From: Lepidodermella squamata
Lineage: Eukaryota; Animalia; Gastrotricha
Direction of reading: 5' to 3'
DNA: 64,000 bases
Assembly: GCA_047495785.1 (NCBI GenBank)
Contig: JBLDXI010000015.1
Coordinates: 4,588,001 to 4,652,000 of the forward strand
Shown: piece by piece, positions 11,101 to 64,000 of the stretch
How positions within the stretch are numbered: the first letter of the stretch is position 1
Layout of the letters: each line of letters begins with the position of its first letter
Position numbers and translations under genes: made by a program
Notes under the pieces: model-generated
The model's database searches: none
Told to the model about the DNA's origin: nothing
What the model saw: only the letters and a program-made list of their open reading frames with translations

Positions 11101-13166
11101 TAAAACCTGGACATTTACTGATTTTCTTTTTGAAATTTCGGAGCATTTTTAGGCCTTCTTTAAGGCTTTTTCACCCAAGTAATCGAAATTTTCCGCCCGC
11201 AAGCTCTAAATATGGCTTCTTGATTTCAAGAAAATCTGGAAATTCAATTATTCAAACAAGAAATTTACAAAAGAATCGAATATTCAATCTTATCGCTAAA
11301 CCGATCAACTTCTTTTTTTTTAGGATTTTCGAAGCTGGCTGGTCTTAACTCGGCTCCCTCGTCTTCGTCGTCATCGCTAGCAAACGCCCCAGGTAGTGAG
11401 ACTGCTTCGCCATCGGCCGGCAATAGATCAGCGGCTTCAAATCACTGGTCGATGCGCCTAGTCAAGCAACTAGCGACCGCAACCGCCTCGGCTGCAGCCG
11501 CCGCCCTACCCCCACCTAACCTCCTACCCGACCTGGTTCGCGTTCTGGTCGACAACTGGATATTCCCACGATCAGAGGAGCCCGCAGCGAGTGTTGTCGG
11601 CGATGTCGATGTTCGAGATCTGAAGGCGTCGACCCCCGATAGCCTGGTGGAACGCATCGCTGTAACTGCTTGCGTGTTGAACGCAGCATTCGGCCAAGCA
11701 GCGGCTGTTCAATTCTGGCAAATAGTTTGCGGCAGGTTGCAGACGATGTGGGAAACGGGTCGGTCTCTGCCGCGAACCGACTCGGCTATACCGCCTGATA
11801 TGAAACAGAGCCTTGTAGCTCAAAAATTCCAGTTGCTAGCTTACTGCCTTGGTCAAAGGCTCAGGCGTGAGAGGGAAGTTGCTAACGCTGGCAGTGCTTT
11901 TATGGCTGACAACTCGAAGGACGCGCAGAAATCTGACGGCAGGCTCCGTATGCTGGACTCTGTCAACAAAACGCAGCTCGTTTCTGGCAAAGACGTGATT
12001 TACGTACCCGAGACGCAGGAACCGGAGCCCATGACTGAGGACGAGTTGCCGATGTTCCCCATTGAGTCGGAGGGGGAACCAGGCGCTGGTATCGGTTTCC
12101 AACATTCGATTCCGTGCCTACAATCCGACATGAGTTCCTTCAAGGCGGCTAATCCTGGATGTGAACTCATCGACTTTTTGCGTTGGTATTCGCCTCGCGA
12201 TGTGCAGACGTCACCGGACGGCACGCCTGTCCTCAGCTCGCGTATGTGTATACCTGATAATGTTTGGCTTTCAACTTGGGAAAAGGCGAAACCGACCCCG
12301 GCGCGACGTCAGAAACGGCTGTTCGACGAAACGAAGGCCGCGCATAATGTATTGAGGTGGTTCAGTGCGCTTGGCAACTCACCTCGCGATCTCATTCTCT
12401 ACCTCCTGCCGGTTGTGATGGGCGCGGCTCTTCGCAGGCTCCTCCGCGAGGCGAAAACAGTTCTACCGACTTCGAACGCGGCGCATCACGTTCCGAGCTC
12501 GAAATACGTGAAAGAAGCTGTCGATGCGGCTACTGAATCCGTTGTGCGAGCTAATAATGCTGTTTCGACCTATGCCCTACACCGATCAGCCGCGAATGCC
12601 GACGGCAGTGGCCGATCGACGCCTATGGACTTCGAATCAGGTGGGCAGTCACCGGGTGCTATCGCTACTGCGGCGCTATCTGCGGCTTTCGACGCAATCA
12701 ATGTTGCCGAGCAGCGCGTTGGTCTACTAGCCGCATTGAGGACAAAACTTTCCGGAGCGATCAGCGCAGGTGATGGAGCAGTTCTTGATGAATTTCTATT
12801 TGCTCTGCTCGCAAACTGCTCGGCTCAAAACAACGGCATCCCGTTTCCAGCGCCTGGAAAAACTCCGGTAATTACATTTGTCAGGGTTTCAGATCGACCC
12901 AAGATATCAAAAAACCTTGTAAATCTGAATTTTATTCATGATTTTTATTATTACAGACCATTCGCGGCGTGGTGCTATCGTTGATATCATCTGAATGTCA
13001 ATCGCCGATGGCTGTTAACACAGTCATTCGCGCCAACTGTCCGAGACCAGCCGCTTTCTCCCGATCCCTGCCCCACCGGCTGTCGGTACGGTTCCACCCT
13101 AACAATCCGACGGCATCATGCTCTCATCTCGCCGCTGCGTTTTCTCGTGATATCATTTTTGCATAA
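5116..13166 (+). CDS. RAB3GAP1: Rab3 GTPase-activating protein catalytic subunit, split by a 4.9-kb intron
   Basis: Exon 1 5116-6430 (DFTAVSEWERF). Phase-1 intron 6431-11323 rejoins in frame to exon 2 from 11324 (YVPETQEPEPMTED, LQSDMSSFKAANPG, DFLRWYSPRD, PARRQKRLFDET). Last exon ends PRPAAFSRSLPHR...AAAFSRDIIFA at 13166. Confidence 0.92.
6830..7102 (-). CDS. Small orphan protein with N-terminal hydrophobic segment, antisense in the RAB3GAP1 intron
   Basis: GC-rich island in an AT-rich intron: MEQFLAGVLAGVAFTAAASGAYHIISRY...GPAYHTRGAARRL; acceptor-like AG just upstream of the ATG. Confidence 0.45.
   Translation of the reverse strand: MEQFLAGVLAGVAFTAAASGAYHIISRYRDRDRQASNDDAVELGLLNNTGSTDSTTATPIVVRYPSRRMPDAMPEVDGPAYHTRGAARRL
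7110..7847. repeat. Two diverged ~170-bp direct repeats (7110-7278 and 7672-7847)
   Basis: Shared blocks in the same order: AATAAAACCTATTC, ATTATTAGCCATGTT, CGCGGGATGCTGC, AGCCCAAGCGAG, CTTTACCTGGC, GAAATTTACCTCTTGGCC. Confidence 0.85.
8739..8794. repeat. Exact 28-bp tandem duplication
   Basis: GCTCCTCCGTTCCTTCGCTCGGGCTCCT twice, at 8739-8766 and 8767-8794. Confidence 0.95.
9168..10683 (-). mobile_element. Ginger2/TDD-like (KRBA2/SCAND3-type integrase) DNA transposon, internally deleted
   Basis: TGT...ACA termini; 104-bp TIRs (9168-9271 and 10580-10683, 2 mismatches); 4-bp TSD TAAA (9164-9167 and 10684-10687); encodes an rve-type integrase. Confidence 0.9.
9365..10388 (-). CDS. Ginger-type transposase (H2C2 zinc finger, truncated rve core, Cys-rich tail), ~322 aa
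   Basis: Exons 10388-10174 and 10118-9365 (phase-2 intron). Motifs HIDLGHCG..CDIC, RAQVDLMD, YQDHFSKF, PVILHSDRGREF and GRARHPQ, then directly CNC..C..CRC..CNSRCH..C.N. Confidence 0.85.
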
Positions 13167-17058: not shown

Positions 17059-18993
<1,935 letters not shown>

Positions 18994-21900: not shown

Positions 21901-23181
21901 AATATTCAGAACTTCATATTACAAAACTCATGCTATATCAGTAAAAATTAACTCAGAATTTTTCATCGGCTTCGGTGGCTACTCGGCTGGGGTCAAACGG
22001 TACCATTCCACGTTGACTAAGAAATCCTGTCTCACTCACATTTTAGAGGGCGCCCTTTTTTCTTCTTACGATCCAATTTTAACCCCTTCTTCTAAGTTTA
22101 AGGAGTCATACCCCTTCTCACTGACCTTGCGCAGGTGCTCATGTCAAAGCCAAACGTTGGCGAGGCGATGATTGAGAGCCATCGACACGGTTGTAGCCGC
22201 AGTTAATAGGTGCAAACTTGACCAGCCGTATCCCCAACACTCGGTGGCTCCGAGACACATAGGACGTCCTTTGAGAAGTCCTCGGAGTAAAACACATCTA
22301 CTGATACTATTTTAACGCTGCTGTGGATTGTGTAACAAATCTCGAAAAATAAATTTGGGAATCAATTGCGAGATAGTGGATAATTAACAGGTTCGCGAGA
22401 CAGATGGCTTTGCGAAGGATTTCCATCGCCAATACTTGGAATGACGTGGAACATTCGAATGAAGTTTTCAATAGTATAAAATGAGCTGATCGTTCTCAGA
22501 ATATGGGCAGGTCCCGGGTTTTAATTCCGATGTTTTTAAATTCATAATCTTCAGGCCAAAAATTGGTCGGCAGATCGCTCATCGGCTTTCCAGGCGTTTC
22601 AACTTAAACGTCATGCTCGTGTCACAATTCTGGCGAAATTATTAGGTACCAAATGATTTCCCACAATTCAATCCAATAAGTGAGATCAAAAAAGCTTGCA
22701 GCTGAGCGGAAGCTTGCGTTTTGAAAATTAAAAATTAAAAAATCAAAACTTCAACCTTTGGGCAGGTCCCGGGACTCCGGGACTGCTGTTAGGCGGAAGC
22801 CGGACCCCGATTTTTTCTCTGTCTGTTTGTGACACCTGCAGCTACTTCAGGTCTTCATTCGTCTTGAGATTTTCTAAACTTGTTGATCTTTGATCCTAAA
22901 ATTTATTCTTGAGATTTTTTTACGTCTCGATATTTACATCAGGTATAACAGCCTTCACTGAGGTTACCGCGGTAAAATCGATCGTTTTTACAGGCACTTA
23001 GTTTTCTTTACTCCGCAGCCCAGGTAACTGCAGCGTATGGAATCCTAAGATTACGCATGCAATCAACAGCACTTACTCATTTTGTCGTGAACCACCTCCC
23101 TCGGTGATCCCTCGGTTAACGTGAATCACCTGAGCATCAGGTGTTCTTGATCACGCAACATGATCGACTGTTGTCGATGGT

Positions 23182-23565
23182 GTCATTCCAGTATCATATT
23201 TACTTTTTTCTCAATGAGGATACTCACGCTGCGCTATCATTCAGTTGAAATCAATCATTATTGTGAAATGACAGTGAAAATGAATGGCAGTGAACTCAGT
23301 GATCAGTGACATCATGTGAGTTTTGTGTCTAATAAAATTAAAGAAATGCCAGGAGAAAGATTCTCTTCGATCTATGTGTACGTCCAGGTTACACATTCGG
23401 AGAGTATCTTACCTCAATATGCATCTAGCAAATGCATGAAGGATGCACGCTCCTCTGATATCAATGCATCAAGAAGTCTATCGGCGTCATTCCAGTATTA
23501 TTTAATCTTTTCTCATCTGGATACTCACGCTGCGCTATCATTCTCTTAAATTCAATACCTTGTGA
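23182..23565. repeat. Two diverged ~80-bp direct repeats (~23182-23264 and ~23486-23565)
   Basis: Shared GTCATTCCAGTAT...TTTTCTCA...GGATACTCACGCTGCGCTATCATTC...TTGTGA. Confidence 0.8.
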
Positions 23566-23879: not shown

Positions 23880-24356
23880 GTGAATACCTTGGAGATTAAT
23901 ATATCGAGCCAGATGCGGTACTGGCAGCCGCCAGATGATACTTGGAGTAGACCTCGAGGGCGACCAAAATTAAGGTGGATTGATTGCATCAAAAAACATC
24001 TGACAAATTAGGGATTATAAATTTTGAGGAGGCCGACGCCCTGACCCATGATAGAACTACTTGGAGACAAAAAATTCAGAGTTATTTTGGTGGAATTGAA
24101 ATATCAGATTCAGGGTGAGTTTTTGAGGTTTACGATCCAGGATAGGTAGCTTGCTACCGGTCCTCCTCCGACACTCGGTTCGCTTGGCGTGAACAAAATT
24201 TACATCACGCCCGGCTAATCGGGTACACCGGAGTGATTTTTATTTCATCATTTTTCCTTCTCATTTTTCTTCGTCTCTGTACACGTACTCAATTGTTATT
24301 GCCATGTTATTGTTGATTAATGAAGGAAAAGATAAAATATGCTATGCTATGCTATG
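23880..24356 (+). mobile_element. 5'-truncated RTE-clade LINE 3' end
   Basis: Degenerate translation WQPPDDTWSRPRGRPKLRWIDCIKKHL...A.DRTTWRQ, typical of an RTE ORF C-terminus; 3' UTR ends in (ATGCT)3 at 24339-24353; 5' boundary approximate. Confidence 0.7.
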
Positions 24357-25037
24357 ATGTCAAACTGGTGTCGCTCTTGGATGTTCTTTAGCTAAGGTTT
24401 ATGACTGATGTGATGCGACTCTCGATTTCGAGCTTCTGACGCGGATACGCCCGCAGCCACCGCTTAAGGGCGTCGACGTGGGTGGCCATACTCCTCTAAT
24501 GGTCGGAATGCTCAGAGGAACAAACATCTAAATCGTTTGTCGTCATCCCTCAGCCAGTTAGGGTGTTCATTAGAAGGGCTGTGCATCCAGTAAAGTCCTC
24601 TTGGATGATAGTCGGACTAGCCACTACGCTGACATTATGGTCATGTCGTTGAGTCGTTCGCGGCGCCCGGCTTGTCAGTACCCTACCCTACCCTAACTAA
24701 TACCTATGACCTGAGCACAATAAAACTGGATGAAGAATTCCGAGGAGAAGCTAGACAACTAACACACCAACTACACCTTTTTTCAATTGCAATTGCGGAA
24801 AATTCAAAACAGTTTGCAGGCACGTGGTTTATGTGTGACGGTTGTTTATCTGAAAATTTAAATTTAAATCACGTGCTCACGCCACCATTTCGTGTCATGT
24901 TTTGAGGCCAGAGACAACTCTTTCATGAACTTTCGAGAAAAGAAGAACGAAAAATGCTCTCAATATTCATCTCATGAAAAAAATTTATTTCCGAAATTTC
25001 TACAAAATTTTTGTTCAAAAAAATTATTCTCAAATTA

Positions 25038-26146
25038 ATGCCTTACAACAGAACATCAAACGTAGATCGGTTAAGGTTGATACGGGCTTTCAATGACGGT
25101 ACTGATTACGTTAATTTCGGTAGGATGCTCGGCATCAAAGAGCGAACGATTTATAACATCATAAGTACTTATAGAGAAGAAAATCGCTCGGAAAGTTTGC
25201 ATCGAGGGGGGCGACCAAAGGCTTGGCGGGAGGATTTTACCCATTTCGTTATTGAGAGGCTTGAGGACAATAGCCAGCTTACCCTGGAACAAATTCAGAC
25301 AATGCTGCTTGTCGAGTTCGGCGCTGGCCTCTCCATTTCCACTATCCATCGTCACCTTGAGTATATCGGCTTTACTGTTAAGAAGGTCTACGCTTGTCCA
25401 GCGGATAGAAATCGACCTGATGTCATAGCCCTAAGAATTGTTTACGCGAATTGGTTCAACGGGTTTCGTCTGCATAACAGGTATTACTATCAGGACGAGT
25501 TCGGGGTCTGCCTTTGGACTCGTCGATCTTGTGGCCGAGCTCGTCGTGGTCAGCGGGCTGTTGTGCAAAATCCGATGTCCCATGGTGGCAAAAATGTGTC
25601 TGTTTCGGTCGTCGTTTCGAGGCATGAGGGGTTGGTCTATTATCGATTGTACGATGAAGGTATGAAAAACAACATGTTTCGTGAGTTTATGCTCCAGGTA
25701 TGAGCGGAAAAATTCATCAAATTGACGATTTTTCTGAAAAATTTGATTTATAGGCGTCAGCAGTGGTTGGCGTTAATAACCCGGCGACTTTCATCATCGA
25801 CAATTGCCGCTCTCACAATGGCGCCGTCGGTGAACTGCCGCAAGGCCATACCATACACTTTTTACCGCCGTACTCACCATTTCTAAACCCAATAGAAAAT
25901 GTTTTCTCTGCTGTCAAGTCTGGCATCAAAAGAGAAATTGCGGCGAGACGTGTCGAGCTGTTTGAGCTTCTAGCCGCTGCCCGAGAACTTGGTCAACCGA
26001 TGACGCCAATTTGTCGAAACTTTCTGCACGAAATTGTCGAGCGTAATCTTCGATCGATCGTTACTCCGGCATTGGTGCGAGCCTGTGACGATCATGTACT
26101 GAATTATCTTCCAGCTTGTGCTGCTGGGCAACCGATTATTTATTAA
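25038..26146 (+). CDS. IS630/Tc1-type DDE transposase, 350 aa, one intron, DD31E spacing
   Basis: Exons 25038-25697 and 25754-26146 (phase 0). HTH region, GGRP linker, second HTH (SISTIHRHL), YQDE, IIDNCRSH and FLPPYSPFLNPIE; no stops or frameshifts. Confidence 0.92.
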
Positions 26147-26264
26147 GAAATTTTTGCAGGAAAAATTGAAGAACCGAAAAAAGATGAATGAAATAAAAGA
26201 AACGTTTAATCGCGTGCTTCGCTTTATTTACGCTAATTCAAAAATTACGAATAAAAATCAGTGT

Positions 26265-26748
26265 TCATTGAAGTGAAGAATACGCCTGCCAAATAGGCTT
26301 TTCAATCAGCTCAATCGCCTTAGCAACAATCGATCCTTCCGAGCGGCGAAGACGTCTCATTAAGTCCGGGTCGAACAACAGATAATCACGAAGGCTTCCT
26401 CTTGAAGGTGCAAACTTGTGCTTTTGCAAATATTGAACAAAAGACAGTTGTAGCTCGTTTTCTTCGGCTTTAGTCCACTTTCGCCGTGATCGATCTAAAT
26501 GAAATGAAATTGAACACAGCTCGTTGCGCATTACATTAATTACCAATATTTGCCATGACAATGTGACGTGGCGGCAGTTCTGGCCGCGGTCGAGGGAGAT
26601 TCGTCGGCACAATCAAGGGCAAGCCCAAGTCTTTCCAGGTTACCTTCTTGCTCGGTGGTTCCGAGACCGAGGCTGATCTTTCTAAAGTGGCCCCACGCTT
26701 TCGGCCACTACGATTTCGATTCGGCGACGGATCGGTTGAACTTGACAT
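26265..26748 (-). CDS. Transposon ORF2, 144 aa, basic/Pro-rich N-terminus plus Myb/SANT-like domain
   Basis: Exons 26748-26544 and 26494-26265; a 49-bp GT-AG intron joins MANI-D-RSRRKWTKAEENELQLSF...RRSEGSIVAKA. Lies wholly between the TIRs; minus-strand AATAAA near 26223. Confidence 0.7.
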
Positions 26749-28720
26749 TTTTATTTGCTTTTCTCACGAAGAATTTGAAGAAACTGAAGGGCTGGACAGA
26801 CATTTAAACTAGTGCAATGCTATTAATAAATGAGTTCAATCCTAGCCAAGATGATACAAGCAAATAAACAAAAAGCACGCGATTGCAATTAGTTTTGAAT
26901 TTTCTGCAATTGCAAATGAAAAAATGTGTATTTGCCCATGAACGCAGAAAAGTCACGTCGTAAACTTTCCAGGCCTTGGCGGCAGTTTGAAGCCAGTCTC
27001 GCAACGTCTGCGAAGGATGGCGTCAGATTTTGCATCATTTTGCATTTTGCGTCTTTTCATCCCCGTGACGGCCAGCTTGACCAACTATTTTACGTCCTCC
27101 TGAGACAGGGTATCGCATAGGACATACCCATTAGAGCTGAGGGGACGGCGGGGGATTTACCGCGCCGATACTCGTTGATGTCAATCACATTTAAAGCTCA
27201 TCGTCACGCTGACTGCATGCTCTGAACGTTTAGCTCACGCTGGGTGACTTGCTCAATGCCACGAACATTAGACCGATGCTCTTGGGGAAATGAGAGATCC
27301 AATATTTCAAGCTGGCCGCTTCCTCTCAAAACGAGCCAGGCGAAAAGAGTGACCTCGACAGCCCGTCTACCGTTTGACATCTTCCTGAAATTGAGAACCT
27401 AGGATTCCAGTGTTGATCTTTGAGATTTTTGAGGTTGTTCGTCTCACTTTTATCGGTTTTCTGTTATCGAAATTATCAAACTAGGGACCTGCCCATTACG
27501 CCACGCTGCCAAGCGCAGCGTAAGACAATGACGCCGTTTGGCGAAAAACGCCCGCGGGCTCTTGCTCAAATTTCAACCAAATTTCATGAAACTTAGAGGG
27601 ATAATTCACTGAATAATGAGAAATCTGTTGACATCAGATTCGTCCTTATCCGAAGCGTGACTGATCCGGAAACCCCGTTCTTACTATGCTTGGCGTCGGA
27701 AAAACTGAATCGCGGATTTTTTCAGAAAAACCTGCGGCGATGGTGATATTATTTTTTATCATTCACTACTCTAATATTTATATTTTATTTTGTTTCAAGT
27801 AATTTTGTATAATTATATTAGGCTAAATATCGGCTGCGTTATTTTTCAAAATCTTTGAAAAGGGCGCGCAATGATGAAGCATACCTCTCTGGGAACAAAA
27901 GGCTGGACCCTGGTTTCGGTTGGCGGATTTCTTTGTGGTTCGTGGACTGTGATAGCAGTGTTGCATGTTGCAATGTGTAATGGCACACTTTTTGACTCTT
28001 GTCAATCATCGCTAATCTTGAAACCCTACATCGTGTCTGATGTTCCTGTTTTCTGTCTAAGTTTCGAGAAATCTCAAAGAGCCGAAGACCTTAAGGATTT
28101 CAACCTCATGGTTTACAATGCTTCCAGCGTCCACGAGCTTCGTTGCATACGTTCCGCTTGACGGTAACTGAATCCTGAATCTTTCCCTTGTTCTCCTGCG
28201 TTCTAGGGGCACTTAACTCCGAGGTTCGAGGCAACACCATAGCGAGTTTTGAGTTGCGTACAAGAAAAACTCCTTTATTCCGCGGCTACAATGCTTGTAT
28301 TAATTTTTAAGAATGATTTATGATTATCATGTAAATCGTTGAGCAGATTCACTCGCGAGCTTCGTATTAATCATCGGTAGATAATCGTAGATTGGTAGAT
28401 AATCATCGTTCAAACGGCGTCTCTCTCAACTATCAATGTGTCCTATTGCAATTTAAATATTTTACGGTTTGATTAGTATTAAATGTCCTCATGTCAGATT
28501 TATAGTGATATTATCATGAATTTTGTTACAATCGATTCGATTAATCTGCTAGCTTTTTTGCGGCAATACGATCTCTGACTATAATCCAAGGTAAGTGTGA
28601 CTTTGCGAACCTAACCAGGAGCATAAAATATAGACATTTTAGAGACTGGTAATGGCATAACGTTGAGCACTTGTTGATTTTTATCAGTGGCTTTCAGCCA
28701 ATTTTGCTGAAACTGCTTCA

Positions 28721-31700
28721 ATGGCTGACACTTGGCGTCAGTGTACACCGCGCTGTCGCTCTAGGAATCATGCGACATGGTTGATATCGGTTATCACAAA
28801 GTCCTCAGAAGTCGAAAGCATCATCAGCTTGTCGCGATGCTATAATCCTGGTTTGGTTGTCGATGAATTGGGTCATACCGTGCTTCACGTTGCTGCGGCA
28901 TGCGGAAAGAAGAAAGTGCTTTCATGGCTTTGTGCCAACTATCGTGTAAATGTTAACGCCAAGGATTATTGTTCCGGTTGGACCCCATTGCATTATGCTA
29001 TGTACCACGGGCAAATGGATGCAGCCATTGCTCTACTTCTGGCTGGAGCTGATTTGTATATGAAAGTATGTGAAAGAATAGGTCCACGTTTTGTTATTGT
29101 AACATCTTTCTCATATAGGACTACAACTGTTTCACGCCACTTGACTTATTGCGAAGTGACGTTCGTCCCTATTCAATGATTTCCGATGATAATGATATGT
29201 TCACTTGGGGAAACAATGCCAGCTACACATTAGGCCAACCCAACGGTCAAAGCAAGGGCAATCCTGAATTCTTGCCGATCTGGTCAGGCGAAGCCGGGAA
29301 CGCGGATCACCCACGACGTCAGTTGTCGCCTGTGGATGTAGTAATGACAAAATACACTTCGTTTTATTTGACCGCAAATGGCCGAGTGTATGCTTGCGGC
29401 TCCGGAAGAGGCGGACGTCTGGGTTTGGGATCTGAACAAACTGTTCTACCTCCCACCTTGATTCAAAGTTTATCTTCGAAGCACATAATTTCAGTGGCGG
29501 CCAATGTAAACCATGCCGCTTTTGTCACGAATGACGGCCAGTTATATGTCACTGGCAGTAACGAACATCAACAGCTCGGCCTTGGCCCTACTTGTACCAA
29601 AGAAGTAGCTCCCAAATTTGTCCGTTTCAAGCGTGATGTAAAGCTGAAATTCGTTGCTTGTGGTCGATTTCACACGGCAGTTATGTCCGATCGAGAACTT
29701 TTTTCCTGTGGTCTTAATGCCGGCCAGCTGGGTCTTCTGAAAGATACGCCCTACCAGAGTGAATTCAAACTTGTTACAGCTGTCAGCGCAGCAGTTCGTG
29801 ACTCGCAGAATGGCCCTACGTTATCCATTTTAACCTGCAGCGATTCCGCTACTATTGTGAAAACGTGTTCTGGCGACGTCTTTGCGCTGATGGCTTACAG
29901 CTGTAAGAAGATTGCCAACTGCCCAGGTATAACGCACATAGCCGCAACTGGTGGCCGATTGGACCATGATTCGATGCCTGACTTTTTGAGAGCCGAGAAA
30001 GGTGCTGATCTGACTGTGCTTATGCTAGTTGGTGAATCGGGGCAAGTCTTGGTTTGGCGCGAGAATTCTCAATCCAGCCAAGGCGGACTGCTGCGTGAGC
30101 TGCGCTGTACTGGCCTTGGCCGTGACCTGTTTGCCACTTGGATTTGGGCACCCTCCACGGCAGCTGACGGTCGGATTCTCATGTGTTCGAATGAGGGAAA
30201 TGCGTTCATTGTAACACTAGCTCCCAGTTCCCAAGCCAATAACAAAGATGCGAAACAAAAACCGTCGAAATCCGAATGGTCAGCTTTTCACGTCGCTGAT
30301 CGTGGCCGTGGCGTTCAATTTCGAGTAAATTCATACGAGCTGGCAAGCTCAACTGTGAGAATCAAACACGTGCATCGCGCGGTGAAAATTGTCGCTGACC
30401 CGGCTTTGGCCAACTTTGCCTGCATCCAATCAAGACCAAACACTGCCGTGGCTGAACTTTCTGTATCCGGGTCTTGTGATCTAGTCACCGACCTGAACAA
30501 GCTGTACGAATCAGTCGGTAGCCCATACGATTCGGGGACTGATGTAGAATTGGTCTTTGGCGCGAATAACTGCCTGTATGCCCACCGCGCCGTTTTAGCT
30601 AGCATGAGCTCGTACTTCAAACGTGTGTTCATCCAAAACGCAAACTCCGGAAACATCGTGAATCCAGTTACCAAGCGCTACAGGATAAATATGACCGACT
30701 GCGAAGATTCGGAATTTCGACCCCTGCTTAAATTTGCTTATTCAGGCTTTGTTGATTTGAAGAACTATTTGGTGAATGACGAATCGAATGGGAAACACCA
30801 GCAACAACATAGTTCGCCCCCATCGATAAAGACTTCACCACCAAGCGGCAAGAATTCGAAGAAGAAGCCGTCGCCTAACAGCAAATCCGGCAAACAAACC
30901 CAACAAGAGCAGCCTCGTTCGCATTTGAACGAAGCAGCTTTTGTCAACACGCAGCTGTTGGGCCGCCTAATTGAGGTTGCGAAGAGATTTGGGTTTGGCG
31001 GTCATGTTTTGGTGAATGAACTTGAATCAGTCAAAAATCTGGCCGCCTCGGGTAAAGCCTATGCAACTTCTTTCAGATCGATGGCGAAACTAGCCCTAGA
31101 ACGTGAGGCCATAGAAGAGCTGGCTGACGTTTGGCTTAAATCTACTGACGGCCTGGAATTTCCGGCTCACCGCTGCATTTTATCATGCCGTTCCGACTAT
31201 TTCTCTTCAATGTTGGCGGTCGGACGATGGGCAGAGGGCGGTAAAGCCATTATCGATCAACCGGTCGATGCCGATGTCCTTCAGTTAGCGCTGACTTACA
31301 TTTACTCAGACTGGCTTGGCGAAGTTTCCGACTGGCGGCTGCTATGCAAGCTAGTCGTTTATGCCGACCAGGTGTTCCTGAGTGGTCTGAAATCGACAGC
31401 CGAAGTTCAGCTGTCAATGTCACCTAGGCTGAATCTGTCGAACTGTTGTCAGCTGGTCGACTTCGCCTACGCTTATCGAGCCGAGTCTCTCCTGCCAGCC
31501 GTCATTCGATTCGCGATTGCGAATATGCCGAGTCTCATGGAGACCTACTTCAACAGTTTGGGCTGCGTTGACGACGAGGCGCTCATTGAGCTGGCGAAAG
31601 AATTCAACAAACTCGTGTGCCCGCCCCAACGCGCGATTAAACCATGGAAGTCAGTAGGACCTACTGCCGAAGAGATTGAGTCGATAATGAGCGAAGCCGC

Positions 31701-34700
31701 TAAAATTCGGCTGTTCATTGACGATGATTTGGAATCGGTCGCACAAAATATAAGCGAGATCTTACTTGATTCGAAAGACCAGAATGCGCCGGGCAATGAA
31801 GGGAAAGGTAATGCGAACAGCAACGCAGTCGCTCGACCTGTTGTTGGGAAAAATCGAAGGCAGCGCCGTCGCAGTAACAACAGCGAGTCGTCCGACGGCA
31901 GCACCGGCGGCGGTGGAGGGCCGATTTTTATTGCGACGAGTATTCCTGGCCCGATGAATCCGCCTTTATCGCCTTCGATAAACTCATCTGCCATGAAATC
32001 TGGGCCGATGTCACCGAGTTTTTCGAACAGGATGAACGCTATGTCGTTGAACAGCGAGCCTTCTTACAACCCGCTAACTGCCTCGAAGAGGAGTGTCGGT
32101 TGGTCGAATGATAACCTGGCGAATAGTTCGTCGAACAGCGGCGGCGAGTCTTTGTCACTGGCCGATATCATGGCTGATGAAAAGCGTCAGCAAGAAAATC
32201 GCGGTAATAAGGCGTCACGCCCGCGCCTGATGCAGCTCCCGCCGTTAACTTGCGGCGTTGCCTCGTCACCGCCATCGTCGCTTTCGAACACCCTGCAAAT
32301 CTTGGCGACTTCGCCGTCGAATGCGCAAATGCGGCCGCCGCCTTCGCCATCTACTGGCACGCGAGGTTGGGGCTGTGTACCGTCATCACCGCTGTCTAGC
32401 AGTCCGGTTCCGATTATGGCTGACATTTTGAGGCAAGAGCAACAGCGTACGGATGCAACTCGCCGGCAAGATCGGCGATCACTTCATCAAATTCAGGTTT
32501 GTAATTGACCTCGCACTTGAATTTTCACTAAGTTTATGAATATCGAATATACGGGATTTTTTGCGCTGTCGGGACTATATATTTCGAGCGTTAAGCAATC
32601 ATTTATGCGAGTTTTGAACCATTAATCGTGCGGCTCGACAATCAGTATAAATTAAGAGTGAGCTGAAAATGAGTTGTTGTACTTGCTGAAAAAATGGCCG
32701 TCAAATATAGAATTGCCGTATTGCAAGTTTCTTCGAATTTTCTTGTTTATAAAACGTAACGCGTTTATTCCGACGTTTCGGTGATACTCAATAACCATCT
32801 TCAGGGATTGATTAAGAAATTAAATCAAATTTGAAGTTAAGTTAATAATTAAGGAGGATGTATCTCGAAGTTGTAATCTGGCTAGTTTTCCATCTTCTTT
32901 TTACACCTCTCATGGAATATCGGCAAATATCCAAAAAATCAGTCACTTGCTTATTGATACCAGGTGATAAATTGACGATGATAAAATCAAAGTCAAGTTG
33001 CTTGCCTAACAAGGCTTGGAATAGCACTGGGGCAGTAGTTGTTTTCGTCAAAATCACTTGAGTTTCTCGCTCCTTATTAAAACAAGTTTCCTTCTTTCGG
33101 CGAATTTGTCGATAAATTTTTGACGAGGCAAGACAACCTGTCCAGACGCCAGAAGAAAAAATAGTCTCATCGCAACGCCATATGTCGATGTTGCGGTAGT
33201 AAAGAAAACGAAAGGAAAACGAAATTTTTTCGGTAGCACTTTCGTCAGCCCATTTATCTCCAGTATTGAAAAGAAAATCAGAAAAGTATTATTAGTAAGA
33301 ATATTGAAAAGTAAGTGAAGATAGCTCGCTTGAAAGCACCAACCCCTCGAAAGCGGAAACGGCCACTACAACGCTACTGGGCCTAGTACTCGACACCGGT
33401 CTATCAATGGAGGAATGCATGACCAAGAAGATCGGTCAGGCCAATAGGGCAATCACGCAGCTCCTAAGACTGAGACCTTACTTATCGACACGCCAGCTCG
33501 AAAATGCTTACAAGACCTACGTTCTACCATACCTCGAATTCGCTATGGTACCATATACATTCGCGGCGTCAGCGTTAAGATGACGGAAGCCAAATTGACA
33601 CCGCTGGGCCATCGCAGATTCGTCGGGGTCATGACGTATCTCTACAAAACTATGGTAGCAGGTCGGGGGACGAAACAAGTCCGCTCGAAATTTATAAAAA
33701 TCCCGAAGCCGAATACAAGAACGAGGGCAGCGAGCGAGAAACACCACCATCAACTACAGCTCGCAAAATCGTCGAAGAACAGGGTCGACACGGCACCCTT
33801 TCGAAGGATGCAAGAGATCGTCAATCAATGGAACGACCTACCACGCGATACCTTCCCTGACACCGTCAACATCACAATATTTAAAGAAAAGATGAACGTC
33901 CTAGGGCGTCGGCTATAAGCCTACTAATGATAACTGTGTGCGCCTGAATTTTTTCGTAAATAAAAAAAAAAAAAACCGTCGGTTTTGCCGAACGAGTTGA
34001 GTCGTTAACATTTCGGAACCATTTGCTCCAGTCGTATCGCCAAGTCAAGCGCCTCACAATCGACCATTTAGGCCTGACCTTAGCGTCGGCGGGGGATTAG
34101 ATTTAGTAGATAGGGAGTAGCTGATGAGGTTTCGTCCAGAGGGATCGTCGCGTGATCGCATTGCCACGCCTGGGCTTCTTTTTCTGATCCAAAGAATAGC
34201 CTCGGTTATGACATCCGGCGCGTGTTGAGCCAGCACGACAACGGGCTTATCATTTTTGGTCATCACTAGCTTTTTAACCGCGAACAACTGCTTGTATATG
34301 AATTCGAAGCTAACAATCCGCGATCGATGTTTTGCAACGGTATTTCGAATGTTGGGTAAAACCCACCTGGAAATGTTTTACGCTTGCTAAAGTTCTCAAC
34401 GCTTTGATGATTTTGAATTTCGAAGGTAGCTGTTGATCTGTGGCCTAGGCGCACCACAAATATGATCATATTTCTTTGGCGATATATTGAATAACACAGG
34501 CGTCGTTCGATATATATTGCATACTCACACGTCACAGTCACACGTGCAGACATAATTTATCAGTCAGAATTAGGTAGTTGGTGTAAGAGGATATATAAGT
34601 AGCTTTAACGTCGTCCGGTAATTGTAATATCGTTAACATGTAGTAAAGTCAAGAATTCTGATCGCTGAACAGAATTCTCAAACTGCCTAGCTGGTACGGG

Positions 34701-37793: not shown

Positions 37794-37873
37794 TTTCATT
37801 GTTCCTTTTTTTGAGTGTGCAAAACTACTGCTGAATGAAAACAAATGAATTATATTTAGGTAGGTTTTATTTT

Positions 37874-39502
37874 ATGGCAAGTTATTGGGGTGCATTCAGC
37901 GACGACGAATCTGTCGATGCTGAAATTTTGAAGGCTATTTCCAAGTCCGAAAGTGGCGAGTTCATTTCCGATGACCAATTTGCGCTGTCTCTTCAGTGGG
38001 AAGAACTGAATGGAGCGAGCGAGAGCAGCAATGACAAATCGAAAAGCACGTTTGTTATCGAGTACGGCGACACGTTGGCCGATGAAGATGGTTTCGAGGT
38101 TATGCCAACGCCGAGTCAAACCTCGATGCCGAAATATGACGATTCGATGTCATCTTCCATAGCGCTATCCGACCCGCAATGGGAGTTGATTGACCCTACG
38201 CCTAATATTCACACGCTATTCATCGAATTCAACAAACGATTTTTCTGGGATAAACTCGGCGCTGTTGAAATTGGGTGGAGCAAGCGAATGACGACTTGCG
38301 CCGGAATTTGTTACTACTCAGGCAGCAGGTCGGGTTACTGCCGAATCGGTCTAAGCGAGCCGTTGCTGAAACTCCGAGCCCGCAAAGAATTATGCGAGAC
38401 ACTGCTTCACGAAATGATTCATGCCTATTTGTTTGTGACTAACAATAACATAGATCATGACGGGCACGGGGGCGAGTTTCATAAGCACATGTATCGGATA
38501 AATCAGGCAACTGGTCTTGCGATCAGTGTGTACCACACCTTCCACGACGAAGTTGCGCATTACAAACGGCACTGGTGGCGATGTGATGGTCCGTGTCGCA
38601 ACAGGCCGCCGTTTAATGGCTACGTGAAACGGGCTTCGAACCGGGCGCCGAGCAAACACGACACGTGGTGGGCGGCGCATGAGCGGAGTTGCGGCGGGAA
38701 ATTTATCAAGGTCAAAGAACCGGAGGAGTACACTGAAAAACAAAAGAAATTGCAGGCTAAAAAGGAAGCGGCGTTATCTGGCTCTCAAACTTCGATATCG
38801 AAAACTGCTAAACCGAAAAATGTGAGAGAAAAAAAAATCTTTTTCGTGACCTAATTAACAACTCTAATTTTTTTAAAGGGCGCTGTGTCTGGAAAGGATA
38901 TTCGTAATTTATGGTCGAATTCCGCAGGAACTTCGTCATCGCCATCTCCTTCTCCTTCGCCGGTCCCTTCGTCGTCTCTTTCGCAGATAGTAATCAGCAA
39001 ACCACCTCCAAAAACAACAAAACCTCCGCCATCTAACAAAACGGACTTCGGCGCCGATATTCGAAATTTTATCTCAGGAAGCTCATCGCAGCCTTCGATT
39101 TCAACCCAATCGAATTCTTCACGGGTTCCAATATCTTTCACCCAGCCGACTTCATCCCATTCCAAAACTACCTCTCAACATGAGATTTCGAGTACTCCTG
39201 TCGATGTAGATCTTTCTAGTAAAGCAACAACTTCGTCAGACGCAGTATTGAACTCTGGCTCTTACTTGCGGAGGATAATCGAGGAAAACCGGCGGCTTCG
39301 AGGTCTCGATCCTTTGCCGGCGCCATCCACCTCAAAATCGCCGGTGAAAGCAATAAGCCAGCCGGTTATTGTTCTGGACGATTCGAGTTCAAGCAGTTCA
39401 ACCGGATATCGGGAGACTACAGTAGCATGTCCTGTCTGCGGGATAAACGTGTCTGAAGCTTCAATTAACTTGCATTTGGATAACTGTCTTTCGAACTCTT
39501 AA
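37874..39502 (+). CDS. SPRTN: DNA-dependent metalloprotease Spartan
   Basis: DPQWELIDPTPNIHTLF, WSKRMTTCAGIC, ETLLHEMIHAYLF (HEXXH) and a C-terminal UBZ4 CPVC...HLDNCL; exons 37874-38821 and 38879-39502. Confidence 0.95.
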
Positions 39503-45618: not shown

Positions 45619-47965
45619 TCAAACTCGTAAGGCTCCTTCGTCCTCGAGGGCGACCTCGAAAACGACAGCTCGTTGGTCGGGCGGCGCTTGCTTGGCACGC
45701 TCGGCAAGGTCAATGAGCCGTTTGATACCGATCCAGATGCGAGCCCGCGACGGATTGTCAACCGAGGTCGCTTCGGTGAGACGGCCGTTGATGTATTCGA
45801 GCTCACGCGGCGTGAAACAATCGAGATTTTCAAGTGTTGTAATGACTTGGTCAGCCGCCTAAAATAAAATCGAATACAATCAATTTATAAATCTAAAAGC
45901 GTCAACTTACCGTGATATTGGGCGTGCCAATGACGCTGGAGAAGACACCAGAGAGGCCGAGATCATCGAGGACTTGCTTGGACGCAGTAGTGGCAATGAC
46001 AAGAAGGCGGCGATTGTGCGGTGCCGGCTCTTTCAGCAGCACCTTGAGCGCTTGCAAAACCAGGTTGGAGTAGCGAGGGCCGATCGGCGCGTAGTCAAGC
46101 AGCGTCTCAATGTCATCGAGAACAATGCAGCTGAGTGCCGATTTGTGCGCGTCGTCGAAGGCCTTTTTGATGGCAAGGCACTTGGCGCTTTCGTGATGCC
46201 CGACCATGGTGCGCGGCGTGCACATGCGAACGAACGGAAATCCGGCCCGGCGAGCAATTTCGCCAGCCAGCGCCGATTTGCCGCAAGCCTCCGGTCCGGA
46301 CAGCAGAATCGACGCCAGACGAGTGCGATCTGAACCACGCACTTGCGCAACAATTAGCTCGGCCGTGTCGAGTACGCGCTTGACAGGGTCGCCCCAAATG
46401 ACAATACCGTTAGGTGCCAAGTCCTGGAATACGTCATCCGATGTCCCGAAAGCTGGTTTTATATCGTTTTCCAGCGCGTATTCAAAATCTTCGCGGGTAA
46501 CCATCAAATTGTCACCGGCGTTATCGTTGAGTTGTATTTTGTTCGAAGCCTTGATCAAGCGGTTCATAGCGGTGAAAGTAGCCGCTCGGACGAGACCTTC
46601 GATCTCGGCGCCGCTAAAATTCCGCGTCCGCTTCGCTAGCTCAGTCAGCTGAATTTCCGACGCCAGCTTTTTGTTCTCCTTCAACAAATTCGTGTGAATG
46701 TTCAAGATTTGAAGACGGCCCGCTTCATCGGGCAAGCTGATCTCCATCTTGACCTCAAGACGGCCCGGGCGAAGCAGCGCCTCGTCGATCATGTCGAGAC
46801 GATTTGTCATGCCGATGACTAGAATGTTGTTCAACTGCTCAACACCGTCGATTTTCGCGAGTAGCTGGTTGACAACGGTATCGTGAACCGACGTCGAACC
46901 GGCGACTGAGCCACGGGCCTTACAAATGGCGTCGATTTCGTCGAAAATAATGATGTGAAGGGCGGAGTGAATACCAAGTCGCTTCTCCTCCTCTTCGGCC
47001 TCCGCAAACAATTTACGAACGTTTGACTCAGACTCGCCGACGTATTTGTCCAAAATTTGAGGACCGCTAATAATTTTAGGCTCACGAGCGTTCAGCATTT
47101 TGGAAATTTGACGTGCCATCAAGGTTTTGCCGGTACCAGGAGGACCGTACAACAGAATGCCGCGGACGTGCTTTAACCCCAACTGTTGAACAAGTTCGGG
47201 AGGGAAAACACGGCTGGCAAAAGCGCGACGGAAAATACCGGCGAATTCACGATCAAGACCTCCGATTCCCATTTTAGTGAAGTCCCAATCTGGGGAAATG
47301 ATGGAGTGCTGAGCCGATTTACCTTTAGCCTTGCCGATAAGGGCCAGAGACGCGTTTTCCGAACGCTCAAACGTAATGATGGTGTTGCCCATAATAAGCC
47401 CCACGTGGGTCAAGTGCGTTTTTGGTTCATTTGGGTCGCTCAAGTCGAGCGCATGCATCTCCTTGACGGTGGCAAGCATTGTTTTGTCCTTTTTCTCTGG
47501 AAATTGGTAAGCAAGAAACTCGCCGGCTGTGAAAGCGCGGTTGCGAAACTGGCTGAGGAAGTCCATGGCCATTTTTTCAGTATCGAATTGATCTACAGGT
47601 TGATTTGTATTGTTGGCTCGTTTCTGTAACAAATCAACCTCGATAGATAGGCTTTGCAAGCGCTGCTGCAATTGAGCGGGTGCAAGTTGAATTTCTTGAT
47701 TCAACGATAAGTTTGCCCATTTTCGCTGCAATGCGCCAACTCCTAGCATGCCGCGAGCTACGTCTTTGTGCGAAACCACAGTGAACATGTAGCTTTGACC
47801 GGGTGATACGAGCATGTTAACATGTCGGAACTGCTCGGCGTTCCAATCTTGAGGATTGACGACAATGCAGTTGGTCAGGGTCAACTCATCGGTGGGAATT
47901 TTAGAAACTTTCAGCTTGATACTACCCATCGGTTGGGCTGGCATGTTCCGAGGCGGAGCTGCCAT
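45619..47965 (-). CDS. NSF: Vesicle-fusing ATPase NSF, ~764 aa
   Basis: MGIGGLDREFAGIFRRAFASRVFPP, GILLYGPPGTGKT, IIIFDEIDAICK and a D2 domain with PIGPRYSNLVLQAL; exons 47965-45911 and 45858-45619. Confidence 0.98.
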
Positions 47966-50892
47966 TTCACTCACTTTGATTAATTTACTAGAAAAAAGCA
48001 CATATAAATCACACTACGAGACATACAGGAGTACTCAAGATAAAATTGTAAGTATGAGGCATCTAATAAACTGGAGAGGGAGTGCAAATAAGTCTGAGCT
48101 GTAAAGCCTCATATGTGTATAATCCCGATGTAGAATTCATTTATAGTGAAATAAAAAGCCACGGTCGTAGGCAAACAAAAAGAAATCGGATCGATAACCC
48201 TTCGTAAAATACATTGCGCAGTACGTCGCATAATAGAATATCGATTTCTATATTACTCGGCGAGAACGCAGTTAACACAGAGGGAAATATGCTATGTGGG
48301 CCACGAGCACAGTACTAGGCTCTCTCATTATTAGATTCTAGATTCACTTCTATTGATCAAAAAAATAATGCATGCGCGAATACCCCCATAAGGTTCCAAA
48401 ATTCTGCGGAAGTCACTCAGACACAAATTTACTAGTTGTCAAAAATAATAGCAAGTTTGCCCGTCTAGGACTTTCGCCAGCGTCAATTCCTTATGCATAA
48501 AAATACTTGCGTAAAAGCAAAGCAAAAATCACAGCGCTTGATCGACTAAAAATAAGATGCAAAAAATGATAGCTCTCATGAGGCTAATGTAAACATTGCA
48601 TGGGTATTATCATGCGCAATAAGCTAGTAAATATTCCATGTGATTAGCATACAGCCAAGTGGAGTGAAAGGTTAAGATTATCAGGGATGACTAAGCCAGA
48701 TTTAATACAAGCTAAAGTTCCCAGATAGCTATATCGGAAAGTAACGACCAAAATGAAGGATTATATTCAACCATAACAAACAAAAAAGAATATTTAACAA
48801 TTATCATTATCGGCGTTAACAAACAATTAGATTGAGTCCGACAGCATGACCGTGAACGGCCTGCTTCAGCATTGGAAACAGGATATTCAGTTATCAGCGA
48901 GAGAACCGCAAAATGATGGGGCACATGAATCTCCACTAAATACTTTCAAATGCTATCTTTTGCATAGTGGTAGGAATGGATATTATCTGTTCTCAATACT
49001 TAAAAAGCATATACCTAGGTTTCGCCGATAATTTTCATCAACTAAGTGGGTGACACATCAATAAATCCAGCAAACCACAATGTTATTGTTGAAGCTGTTA
49101 TGCTCCAAGAACAGCCAATAATTTTATGCATACTTGAATCAAGAACAAATAAAGCCATAAATTTCACTGTGGCAAAGTGATTGCTTTTTGTGGCGTGGCG
49201 CACTGGACAAACGACTCAACACAGATCGCGATTCGAAATGTTTGTACCTGTTTTGGAAGGCAGTGGTCGGGGCTGTTACTATGACCCTCTCAAGTATAGC
49301 AGAAAGAATTTCTACGTTTAGGATACACTAATTACAACAATAGAGCCATGCTATCTATGGCTGCGTGACTAAGGCGTCCAATGCGTAACTAAGGACTCAA
49401 ATCGAGCTAGCAATAGACCGATATATAGCGAGTTGCAACATACTTATCTCAGCCAACCAAAATTGTAGGATGTAGCCATTAGGATTAGAAGGAATGTCTA
49501 GAATGATTCCATATGTTGAAAACTACTATTCGGTGGATACCACCTAGTATCCGGCCTAATGCTTAATTTGAAACCGTCCGCGAGAAAATAATGAGAATTG
49601 TTCGCAATATGCCACAAAGTGTCAAAAAAACTTTCATTGGACATTACCTCGATTTTAACTAGAGATTCATGATTCATGAATACTCAAACCACTGTGCCAG
49701 TAACCAGTAATCAGTCATGCAGGCGTTCTCATTATTTCCTTCTGTAGCCAAAGTAGAATAACTTACTAGGTCCTAATACAGATACTGCTCGTTAACAGCA
49801 TACTCGTTCAGTAAGCATAATATCATGAAAAATAAAGCAACAGTAGCAAATCGCATAAATCGGCGATATGCTTGCCTCACCTGATACTGAAAATGAAATG
49901 CCAACTGGAGGAATAAGCTTAAAATGAAATATAGAAGATTGAGGCCATATATGGTGCTTGATGCATGATGAGATGAGACGTCAACATAAATCATTAGAGG
50001 TTCTGCGATTGAATGAGGCAGATTCGATACGTGGCATGATTTAACGTATGCGGTTAGCGACGCGTCGATAAATGCGACCCTGCGAAGGTCGAAGCGGAAA
50101 TGGGGGGCAAGATTTTTTATGATCGATTAAAATAATTTTTATGGCCGATTTTTATCAGTCCTATGATGTCGTTATGATAGCCTCAATTATATTTCTTTAT
50201 ACATACTGTTCTTCACAATATTTACAGTAATTTTTTTCGAAAATCGCGAAACCAAAACCCACGGCGGTGTTTCGACCGGGACAGTGAAAGCTGGTTCAGC
50301 GGTCGGTTGCTCAGCTCTGAGCTCCGAGCTCTGCCCATCTATCAAGTCGAAATACCTGCTAAAAGTTCTGCGTCATATTTCCGGATTTAATTGGGTTATT
50401 TTTCCTAGAGCGCACTACCTTGTCCCGTACAGGCTTTTGGCCATCGAGAACTCGTGTGGAGAATCCACTCCTGCTCCTTGACTGTTAACTTTGCTTTGTT
50501 TTTGTTTGCACTTGAACAGACCATAGCATTACATCTCGCATTTTCGCTTGAATATTGAACGGTGCGAATATTAAATATTGATTATTGATTACTTATGCTT
50601 TATGCTGAAGATGGCACGTAAACAACTTGTACTGTCATGTAGGTTGAAACCTATTCTTTTACTATTCTTTTATTCCTTTTATAGTATTCCTTTTACTATT
50701 CTTCGATACCTTTAACTACATCTTCATTATTTCACAATATATTTTGCGTGTTCGCTAGAGAGAAAAGTTCTTATTCTCCGAGCGTAAATCACCTGTCTTC
50801 GTGTGCTAACGCTAGAACTAAGCGTTACTCGAACGTTAAGTCGATTGTGTAGCCGATTTATGTCTTAATAGGTAATTTATCATCCCACCGCT

Positions 50893-63058: not shown

Positions 63059-64000
63059 TCAATGGGAGTAAGGGCATTCGACATTGCGGCAGTCTCGCAA
63101 AGTGCACGGTGGGTGAATAAAGAGACATTCTACTCCGAACTTGCAGAATGGGAACAACTGACAATTTTTGGTTGGATGCACGAATTCGCAATCTTCACCT
63201 TTCTTGCAGTTCGGCCAGAACCGGCACCGCTTTTTCTTAGACGTGCCTGCATTAGCATTTTTCGTAGCCATTCCCTCAATTTGCCACTTTTTACGCCTCT
63301 GAATTTCATTGCTATTGCCGTGAAACTCTTCATTTTCAGCACCACTTTCGCCACCACTGACCACGATTGAAACAGAACCGGGCTTGTTTTCGCCTAGAAA
63401 TTTTTTGAACAGACTAGCGATAGTTTTGAAATCATCGAGCACCGGCTTTGAATCTTGATTTTGAAGAGCTTCCGATGACAGCATGCAAAGATTGATAAGT
63501 TGATCGAGACGCTCTTTACAGCTCGCAGAAGTTAGGAAGAAGTCACCCCACATGGAAACAGCTCTGCGAACATTCAATAACTGGGGCGGAATAAGAGCAA
63601 TAGCTGCCTTGCTAATGTTGTACAGATTCGGAGGTGTTAGTACATGACGAAGACAGTTGAACAAATCTTTGGTAGACACGCTGGTGCCAGGCGCAAGGCC
63701 TAGGCCGAACTCTCGTCTAATTCGACCGAGCCCAGCTTCGATATCAACCGCAGAAGATCCGTTACCGGGTGAAACCTTACGCCAAGTTTGAATGATGTCA
63801 TTGATGATGGAGTCGACAAATTCCGCAAAAGCAGCGGAGAAACTCGACTCGGTCAGCGGCACGAATCGACGTTCGATGACATGAGTTCGTTTTCGGCCTG
63901 ATAGTAGAGACGCAGGGGGAGGCGGGATATTTCTGCATCTCAGAATCGCGGACGGAATCGACGTCATCGCCGGTTGCTGCTGATCATTTGATACTACGAT
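63059..64000 (-). CDS. ZC3H14/Nab2-type CCCH zinc-finger protein, 3' part
   Basis: C-terminal CRFWPNCKKGEDCEFVHP, CQLFPFCKFGVECLFIHPPC and CRNVECPYSH; the frame stays open to the window edge. Confidence 0.65.
   Translation of the reverse strand: MVVSNDQQQPAMTSIPSAILRCRNIPPPPASLLSGRKRTHVIERRFVPLTESSFSAAFAEFVDSIINDIIQTWRKVSPGNGSSAVDIEAGLGRIRREFGLGLAPGTSVSTKDLFNCLRHVLTPPNLYNISKAAIALIPPQLLNVRRAVSMWGDFFLTSASCKERLDQLINLCMLSSEALQNQDSKPVLDDFKTIASLFKKFLGENKPGSVSIVVSGGESGAENEEFHGNSNEIQRRKKWQIEGMATKNANAGTSKKKRCRFWPNCKKGEDCEFVHPTKNCQLFPFCKFGVECLFIHPPCTLRDCRNVECPYSH

Follow-up and report, generated by a model that had tools for sequence, protein, structure and literature searches.

In a 64,000-nucleotide stretch of the genome of the gastrotrich Lepidodermella squamata (contig JBLDXI010000015.1, positions 4,588,001 to 4,652,000 of the forward strand; hereafter the window, whose numbering is used throughout), we describe a transposon at 24774-26928 that pairs an intron-containing transposase of the IS630/Tc1/mariner (ITm) superfamily with a second, convergent spliced gene, ORF2 (open reading frame 2), encoding a small basic protein. 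From public reads, relatives of the element and a structural model of the ORF2 product, we favour the reading that this is an autonomous, active ITm two-gene unit in which ORF2 is a putative DNA-binding partner acting together with the transposase, and we regard that reading as probable.

Three public sequencing runs contain the element and were examined over 24300-27400: X1 (labelled, it seems, as RNA), X3 (RNA-like) and X2 (DNA-like). Assembled contigs from X1 and X3 skip exactly 56 nt bounded by GT..AG and 49 nt bounded by CT..AC, the latter being GT..AG on the minus strand, and each splice joint is carried by 215-255 letters on its shorter side with 0 mismatches. A single 2124-base contig in X2 spans the element with both introns, and neither splice joint is present in that run, which argues that the spliced forms are RNA and not processed copies. 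The initial annotation had described two intact, tail-to-tail spliced genes and had proposed RNA sequencing as a check on both junctions; the exon coordinates (Table 1) and the reads agree with that description, the introns removed being precisely the two predicted. It had also placed poly(A) signals on both strands of the 118-bp gap between the stop codons of the convergent genes (26147-26264), where AATAAA is indeed present at 26192 (plus strand) and 26228-26223 (minus strand). The X1 transposase contig stops 9 nt past its signal and the X3 ORF2 contig 13 nt past its own; the two mRNAs terminate nearly back to back.

Two further X1 contigs touch on transcription. One of 103 bases (depth 27) covers 24985-25064 and then continues into 23 A's that are absent from the genome; it may represent a short, prematurely terminated transcript whose poly(A) tail was added 27 nt into the coding sequence of the transposase, or an assembly artefact. 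The other, a spliced ORF2 contig, runs through the right terminal inverted repeat (TIR) and 30 letters into a flank unlike that of the window, which implies that, in one other copy or more, transcription begins at the end of the element or outside it. Either the TIR may contain the promoter of ORF2, or transcription may read through from host DNA.

The same runs bear on mobility. An X2 contig joins 24771 to 26929, a skip of 2157 nt with a 2-nt ambiguity that corresponds to a target with a single TA, and the existence of this empty-site allele indicates that the insertion is polymorphic and young. Contig word depth in X2, a rough measure of copy number, is 129.5 for the empty-site contig, about 180 for unique flank and 550 for the element contig (about three times the flank). 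In X1 and X2, several different sequences follow position 26930, marking other insertion sites, and the number of variant letters reported inside the element in the three runs is 0. Taken together, the empty site, the depths, the flanks and the lack of variants point to a handful of copies without sequence differences, with the two-gene block moving as a unit. Intact genes, expression, an insertion polymorphism and copies that are alike are thus all found and, with activity read from sequence data, they identify the element as a recently mobile cut-and-paste transposon that is currently or very recently active. Only runs under two organism labels contain copies that are identical across the sampled words; a third label yields 6-9% of the sampled words, and a fourth, from the same study, none.

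The initial annotation gave the element as 2155 bp long, TA-flanked and bounded by 37-bp TIRs. Its coordinates and ends were re-derived here: the left end and the reverse complement of the right are identical at 34 of 37 bases, and a repeat search extends the similarity, more weakly, to arms of 67 nt at 82%. Two patterns taken from the end, a 33-mer and a 25-mer, were each found exactly twice in the 64-kb window, once per end of the element, against a chance expectation of 0 (100 shuffles); no second copy, and no miniature inverted-repeat transposable element sharing these ends, was found within the window. Subterminal repeats containing TTGCA lie inside the element. Its left flank (24400-24720) is repetitive: word depth in X2 is 770-1740 against about 180 on the right, variant letters are numerous, and one allele has an 8-bp insertion at 24711. 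The element adjoins or lies within another repeat. Farther out, 1.2 kb upstream of the element (23179-23556), two pairs of direct repeats (32 and 38 nt, 78-89% identity) with a spacing of 301-304 bp indicate that a segment of about 300 bp was duplicated in tandem and has diverged.

The transposase is a protein of 350 aa that begins at the ATG at 25038. Exon 1 matches Pfam HTH_32 (1.4e-8) as well as HTH_29, HTH_28, HTH_23 and the start of DDE_3, the end of which is found in exon 2 (8e-10), and the NCBIfam IS630 model recognizes both exons (68.5 bits over positions 2-212 for exon 1; 39.6 bits over 225-287 of 299 for exon 2). The catalytic residues are D153 (in QDEFG), D236 (IIDNC) and E268 (NPIEN), an unusual and short D-82-D-31-E arrangement with 82 and 31 residues between them. 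The D and E residues are invariant in an alignment with relatives, where the spacers are 31, 31, 30 and 28: 31 residues in the window copy and in the nearest relatives, L001 and L002 (below), and 28-30 in remoter ones. With helix-turn-helix (HTH) domains, a DDE_3/IS630 catalytic domain, a complete DDE triad, a TA duplication and TIRs, the element is, by its sequence features, a TA-inserting transposon of the ITm superfamily, nearest to IS630-type profiles, and the superfamily assignment made in the initial annotation stands.

Within that superfamily, a Tc3-type HTH model and the mariner Pfam models gave no match to the transposase, HTH_SB reached 18.6 bits, below its cut-off of 43, and solved ITm transposases gave no sequence match. 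Filing the element under Tc1 (DD34E) or L31 (DD37E) was considered and rejected on the 31-residue spacer, which is neither 34 nor 37, with L31 judged by the spacer alone. An imperfect palindrome at 25143-25190 in exon 1 (arms of 27-30 nt, 70-73%) is probably due to chance.

ORF2 encodes a protein of 144 aa with an overall isoelectric point (pI) of 10.6. Whether it belongs to the element was assessed through relatives. A search with transposase exon 2 found P0001 (64% identical) and P0002 (61%), which come from a single Logan-assembled public sample and lie on contigs L001 (1160 bp) and L002 (939 bp); neither contig reaches the element ends. Each contig carries a convergent gene just downstream of a transposase 57-64% identical to that of the window. 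The gene of L001 is a clear ORF2 homologue (tblastn 9e-34, full length), with 57% identity over 140 codons once a 60-nt intron is removed; this intron agrees in codon position and phase with the 49-nt one of the window copy, and the position of the transposase intron is likewise shared. The proportions of nonsynonymous (pN) and synonymous (pS) differences between the window and L001 copies of ORF2 are 0.315 and 0.89, the latter saturated, giving a pN/pS of 0.35, compared with 0.33 for transposase exon 2 in the same pair. Both halves of the protein contribute: 55% identity in the basic, proline-rich N-terminal half (pN/pS 0.39) and 59% in the C-terminal domain. The convergent ORF of L002 runs to the end of its contig without a stop or an intron. 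It is 20% identical to the ORF2 domain, with weak reciprocal tblastn (E 0.005-0.007) and hhalign (E 0.021) matches, and shares a proline-rich stretch, a basic arm (KRNKKKW against RSRRKW) and twelve invariant positions; it is probably an ORF2 homologue.

As judged from these comparisons, ORF2 is a conserved component of the element, and purifying selection acts on it as strongly as on the transposase. The initial annotation had proposed collecting homologues as a test of whether ORF2 co-occurs with the transposase and evolves at a ratio below 1, and co-occurrence was borne out, clearly in L001 and with weak similarity in L002, as was a ratio below 1 (measured as pN/pS) between the window and L001 copies. 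The conservation also speaks to the idea that ORF2 is a passenger, derived from a fragment of a host gene that one element picked up and having no role in it. Gene-fragment capture does occur in DNA transposons, and no homologue of ORF2 was found in large protein collections. Yet relatives with a transposase identity of only 57-64% carry the same gene in the corresponding position, the nearest of them shares the intron and shows a pN/pS of 0.35, and the blank searches weigh little, as truncated or intron-containing gene calls are missing from such collections. Because ORF2 recurs in this way in diverged relatives and is under purifying selection, we do not regard it as a passenger; the conservation data nearly exclude that explanation, which we hold to be very improbable, and we continue with ORF2 as a working part of a two-gene unit.

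Neither a word-indexed search with the ORF2 domain, covering 5.8 billion proteins, nor an exhaustive phmmer search of 1.84 billion representatives with ORF2 gave a match. This is weak evidence, since the L001 homologue is itself absent from the collection, which omits truncated gene calls. Transposase exon 1, used in a word search, gave no match either. A scan of JGI metagenomes with the ORF2 alignment found no relative, and one with the transposase alignment found 80 distant loci, in which tblastn and hmmsearch detected no ORF2-like sequence; a count of convergent downstream ORFs at these loci is uninformative, as they are mixed and probably mostly prokaryotic. The contexts of P0003 and P0005-P0009, which are remoter relatives, are too short to judge whether ORF2 is present. 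Two Tara Oceans marine metagenome contigs, L003 (1009-2176) and L004, encode IS630-like transposases 34% identical to that of the window, in each of which an apparent short intron separates an HTH part of 212 aa from a DDE part of 168 aa, with 28 residues between the second D and the E. They suggest a wider eukaryotic clade with short spacers.

Searches of ORF2 and the L001 and L002 proteins against Pfam (E up to 10), NCBIfam and PHROGs returned no meaningful family, Myb, SANT and MADF included, and a three-sequence ORF2 profile found no relevant match among PDB sequences. A Z-alpha winged-helix candidate (phmmer against PDB, E 0.2, over the whole domain) was rejected: it vanished with the three-sequence profile, the N and Y that make the key Z-DNA contacts are unconserved, and the ORF2 model is all-helical. 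Predicted by AlphaFold2 from a single sequence, ORF2 is poorly modelled (predicted local distance difference test, pLDDT, 60) and its Foldseek matches are meaningless; the three-sequence alignment raises the pLDDT to 85.3, with a predicted template modelling score of 0.70 and helices at domain residues 8-25, 31-40, 44-48, 52-64 and 66-72. Foldseek found no significant match to the model in PDB or among Swiss-Prot models. In an unbiased structural search of 48,161 chains, homeodomains lead (Z 5-6.1), with MATalpha2 at Z 6.1 followed by engrailed, CRX, HOXB13 and others; one unrelated Atg-complex chain stands among these leading matches, and TGIF1 and Pdx1 come next. Myb-type and related domains then follow at Z 4.3-4.9 (Cdc5, GT-1 trihelix, Zeste, Reb1, ARR1, LUX and the SANT-SLIDE of Chd1), and over both structural looks Myb-type domains range from Z 3.4 to 4.9 (Cdc5, GT-1, Zeste, c-Myb, KNL-2). 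The best rows among AlphaFold DB clusters have E 0.5-1.3 and probability up to 0.96; the matches include six 'Myb-like domain-containing' proteins, and most of the Myb-like matches are small and, like ORF2, have the domain in question close to the C-terminus or right at it. Protein-language-model neighbours are Rap1-Myb and Myb clusters at 0.87, a lead only, and Atlas features for the L002 domain (0.62) were uninformative.

Our reading is that ORF2 begins with a basic region resembling a nuclear localization signal (NLS), followed by a basic arm and then by a putative homeodomain-like domain of three helices. The model fits the Myb/SANT/homeodomain fold class, and its scores support the common helical arrangement only, being too low for a choice of family. 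The label 'Myb/SANT-like' given to ORF2 in the initial annotation is therefore kept in part: the AlphaFold2 model fits the three-helix fold class, whereas membership of the Myb, SANT or MADF families finds no profile match.

That fold class also leaves room for ORF2 to act on the host, as a SANT-like chromatin or protein-interaction module serving to tether the transposition complex to chromatin, to direct target choice or to counter silencing. It includes SANT and SLIDE domains that do not bind DNA (Chd1 at Z 4.4, CASP8AP2 at Z 3.6), and helix 3 of the window copy is hydrophobic and acidic. However, the window, L001 and L002 versions of the domain are all basic (pI 9.5-10.1), while SANT domains that bind histone tails are usually acidic, and a basic arm before helix 1 is typical of DNA-binding homeodomains. 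We consider a host-directed role decidedly unlikely and keep to a DNA-binding partner of the transposase.

A partner of this kind could also restrain its transposase. As a negative regulator, ORF2 would keep the copy number low, either by binding at the element ends or the transposase promoter or by titrating the transposase. The low copy number (element depth about three times the flank) would suit this role, as would a basic protein with an HTH-type fold in the model, and contig depth, a poor measure, is similar or higher for ORF2 than for the transposase (53 and 25 in X1, 5.8 and 6.9 in X3). A competitor would be expected to resemble the DNA-binding domain of the transposase, but BLASTP found no similarity between ORF2 and the N-terminal HTH region of the transposase, so that ORF2 is not a copy of that domain; moreover, an essential function would account no less well for purifying selection that matches that on the transposase. 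Negative regulation is, in our view, unlikely, and the partnership described at the outset remains the reading we prefer.

We propose the following mechanism for this partnership. Like those of other ITm elements, the transposase would bind the 37-bp TIRs through its paired HTH domains, and cut and paste at TA. ORF2 would be a small nuclear protein, built from an NLS-like basic N-terminal half, a basic arm and a three-helix domain, that binds DNA, most plausibly at the element ends or at the TTGCA-containing subterminal repeats. There it may help the transposase, in end recognition or in nuclear import, as the Myb-like protein does for PIF/Harbinger; alternatively, it may act as a dose-dependent regulator of the transposase.

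Several points weigh against this reading. Conservation of ORF2 within the family rests on three lineages, two of them represented by short contigs (0.9-1.2 kb) from one sample, and the similarity of the L002 protein to ORF2 is weak. No ORF2 homologue was detected in the remoter relatives (transposase 27-45% identical; marine and other metagenomes), whose contigs are mostly short and many of which may be prokaryotic. The structural matches are of middling strength, with Z no higher than 6.1 and Foldseek E no lower than 0.5, and the model is built on three sequences. Helix 3 is not enriched in the polar or basic residues typical of recognition helices, and no profile match supports the putative DNA binding by ORF2. 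Contig word depth, finally, is a poor measure of copy number.

Set beside known systems, the element resembles IS630/ITm transposons in its HTH and DDE_3 transposase, TA duplication, short TIRs and length of about 2 kb, and differs from them in that it has a second gene, itself conserved, that both genes contain spliceosomal introns and that the spacer between the second D and the E is 31 residues (against 34 in Tc1 and 34D in mariner). In outline it may operate as PIF/Harbinger does, with a DDE transposase joined by a small element-encoded protein that has basic NLS-like stretches and a tri-helical HTH domain, which in ORF2 is a predicted one. The Harbinger Myb-like protein is required for nuclear import and end binding. 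Unlike the element described here, with its IS630-like DDE_3 domain and TA duplication, PIF/Harbinger has an IS5-like DDE_Tnp_4 transposase and a 3-bp TWA duplication, and its partner proteins match Pfam Myb_DNA-bind models, none of which ORF2 matches.

The initial annotation had noted that multi-ORF members of the superfamily exist, and the literature on ciliates confirms it: TBE elements have three ORFs, Tec elements include a recombinase (PMC7325037), and Sardine, Thon, Anchois and Tennessee of Paramecium have hypothetical extra ORFs, with a spacer of 32 aa in Sardine and Thon and a possible transposase intron in Anchois (PMC3464196). These elements share with ours an IS630/Tc1-type DDE transposase and the presence of extra ORFs, and some of them a short spacer or a possible intron. 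They are unlike it in size (3.6-6.7 kb), in having 3-4 ORFs and in belonging to hosts with germline-limited DNA; their extra ORFs encode a zinc-finger protein, a tyrosine recombinase or hypothetical proteins of more than 200 aa, compared with ORF2 by description only. Elements of the L31 family reportedly carry an additional ORF2, according to Puzakov and colleagues. L31 is a minor ITm family of molluscs and cnidarians with a DD37E signature (PMC7325037); compared by description and not by sequence, it differs from our element in its spacer of 37 against 31. TLEWI of bivalves is an intron-containing Tc1-like element with GT..AG introns and spliced transcripts (bioRxiv 10.1101/656579), alike in having spliceosomal introns inside an ITm transposase gene and unlike in being DD36E and domesticated-looking, with neither TIRs nor a second gene. 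A literature search that left papers on the L31 ORF2 outside its scope found no paper on an ITm element with a Myb-like or homeodomain-like second gene. The novelty of the element is bounded, because multi-ORF IS630/Tc1 elements have already been described in ciliates (PMC7325037, PMC3464196). Judged by its spacer and introns, the element appears to define a short-spacer (DD28-31E), intron-bearing, IS630-like eukaryotic clade unnamed in current ITm classifications.

The surroundings of the element are those of an ordinary-looking animal genome (Table 1). The nearest large host gene, at 28721-32508, lies 1.8 kb to its right, and its ORFs, read by eye, contain ankyrin-like and RCC1-like repeats and BTB-like regions in an IBTK-like layout; the rest of the window consists of ordinary-looking animal genes, and no other transposase gene was found among the ten large ORFs scanned.

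Table 1. Features of the two-gene transposon and neighbouring genes, in window coordinates
Feature	Position	Strand	Remarks
Whole element	24774-26928		2155 bp; starts CAC, ends GTG; TA directly outside both ends
Left TA target-site duplication	24772-24773		From sequence; single TA in the X2 empty-site contig
Left terminal inverted repeat	24774-24810	+	37 bp; starts CAC; inverted-repeat comparison
Transposase exon 1	25038-25697	+	220 aa; N-terminal HTH domains and first catalytic D (D153)
Transposase intron	25698-25753	+	56 nt; GT..AG; phase 0; gone from X1 and X3 contigs, kept in X2
Transposase exon 2	25754-26146	+	130 aa and stop; D236 and E268
AATAAA poly(A) signal, transposase mRNA	26192-26197	+	X1 transposase contig stops at 26206
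AATAAA poly(A) signal, ORF2 mRNA	26223-26228	-	X3 ORF2 contig stops at 26210
ORF2 exon 2	26265-26494	-	Basic arm RSRRKW, predicted homeodomain-like helical domain (residues 70-144) and stop
ORF2 intron	26495-26543	-	49 nt; GT..AG on minus strand; phase 1; gone from X1 and X3 contigs
ORF2 exon 1	26544-26748	-	Basic, proline-rich N-terminal part, pI 11.3; NLS-like SGRKRG and PSKK
Right terminal inverted repeat	26892-26928	-	37 bp; inverted-repeat comparison
Right TA target-site duplication	26929-26930		From sequence; X2 empty-site contig
Rab3GAP catalytic subunit	11452-12981		
Homeobox gene	17904-18896		
Spartan/SprT	37835-38851		
CDC48-like AAA ATPase	45905-48001	-	
Adaptin	52555-53448		
Class C GPCR	57985-60402	-	
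Nab2-type zinc-finger protein	63062-63967	-	

A broader possibility, which we think quite unlikely, is that ORF2 is one case of a genome-wide habit, in which unrelated DNA-transposon superfamilies each have a small Myb-like or homeodomain-like partner gene. Should such partners be related to one another, or have been recruited more than once, the host lineage would impose a common requirement on its cut-and-paste transposons, for a DNA-binding, nuclear-import or anti-silencing factor, and helper genes would pass as modules from one transposon superfamily to another.

IS630/Tc1/mariner elements are the textbook transposase-only transposons, and hence cross easily between species and serve as gene-transfer tools. 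The element of L. squamata represents an animal ITm lineage that keeps a second gene, under selection equal to that on its transposase, and that is still active. At 2.2 kb and with two small genes, it would offer a tractable system in which to study what a partner protein adds to such a transposase, be it end recognition, nuclear import, regulation or interaction with the host, and would allow comparison with the independent solution of PIF/Harbinger.

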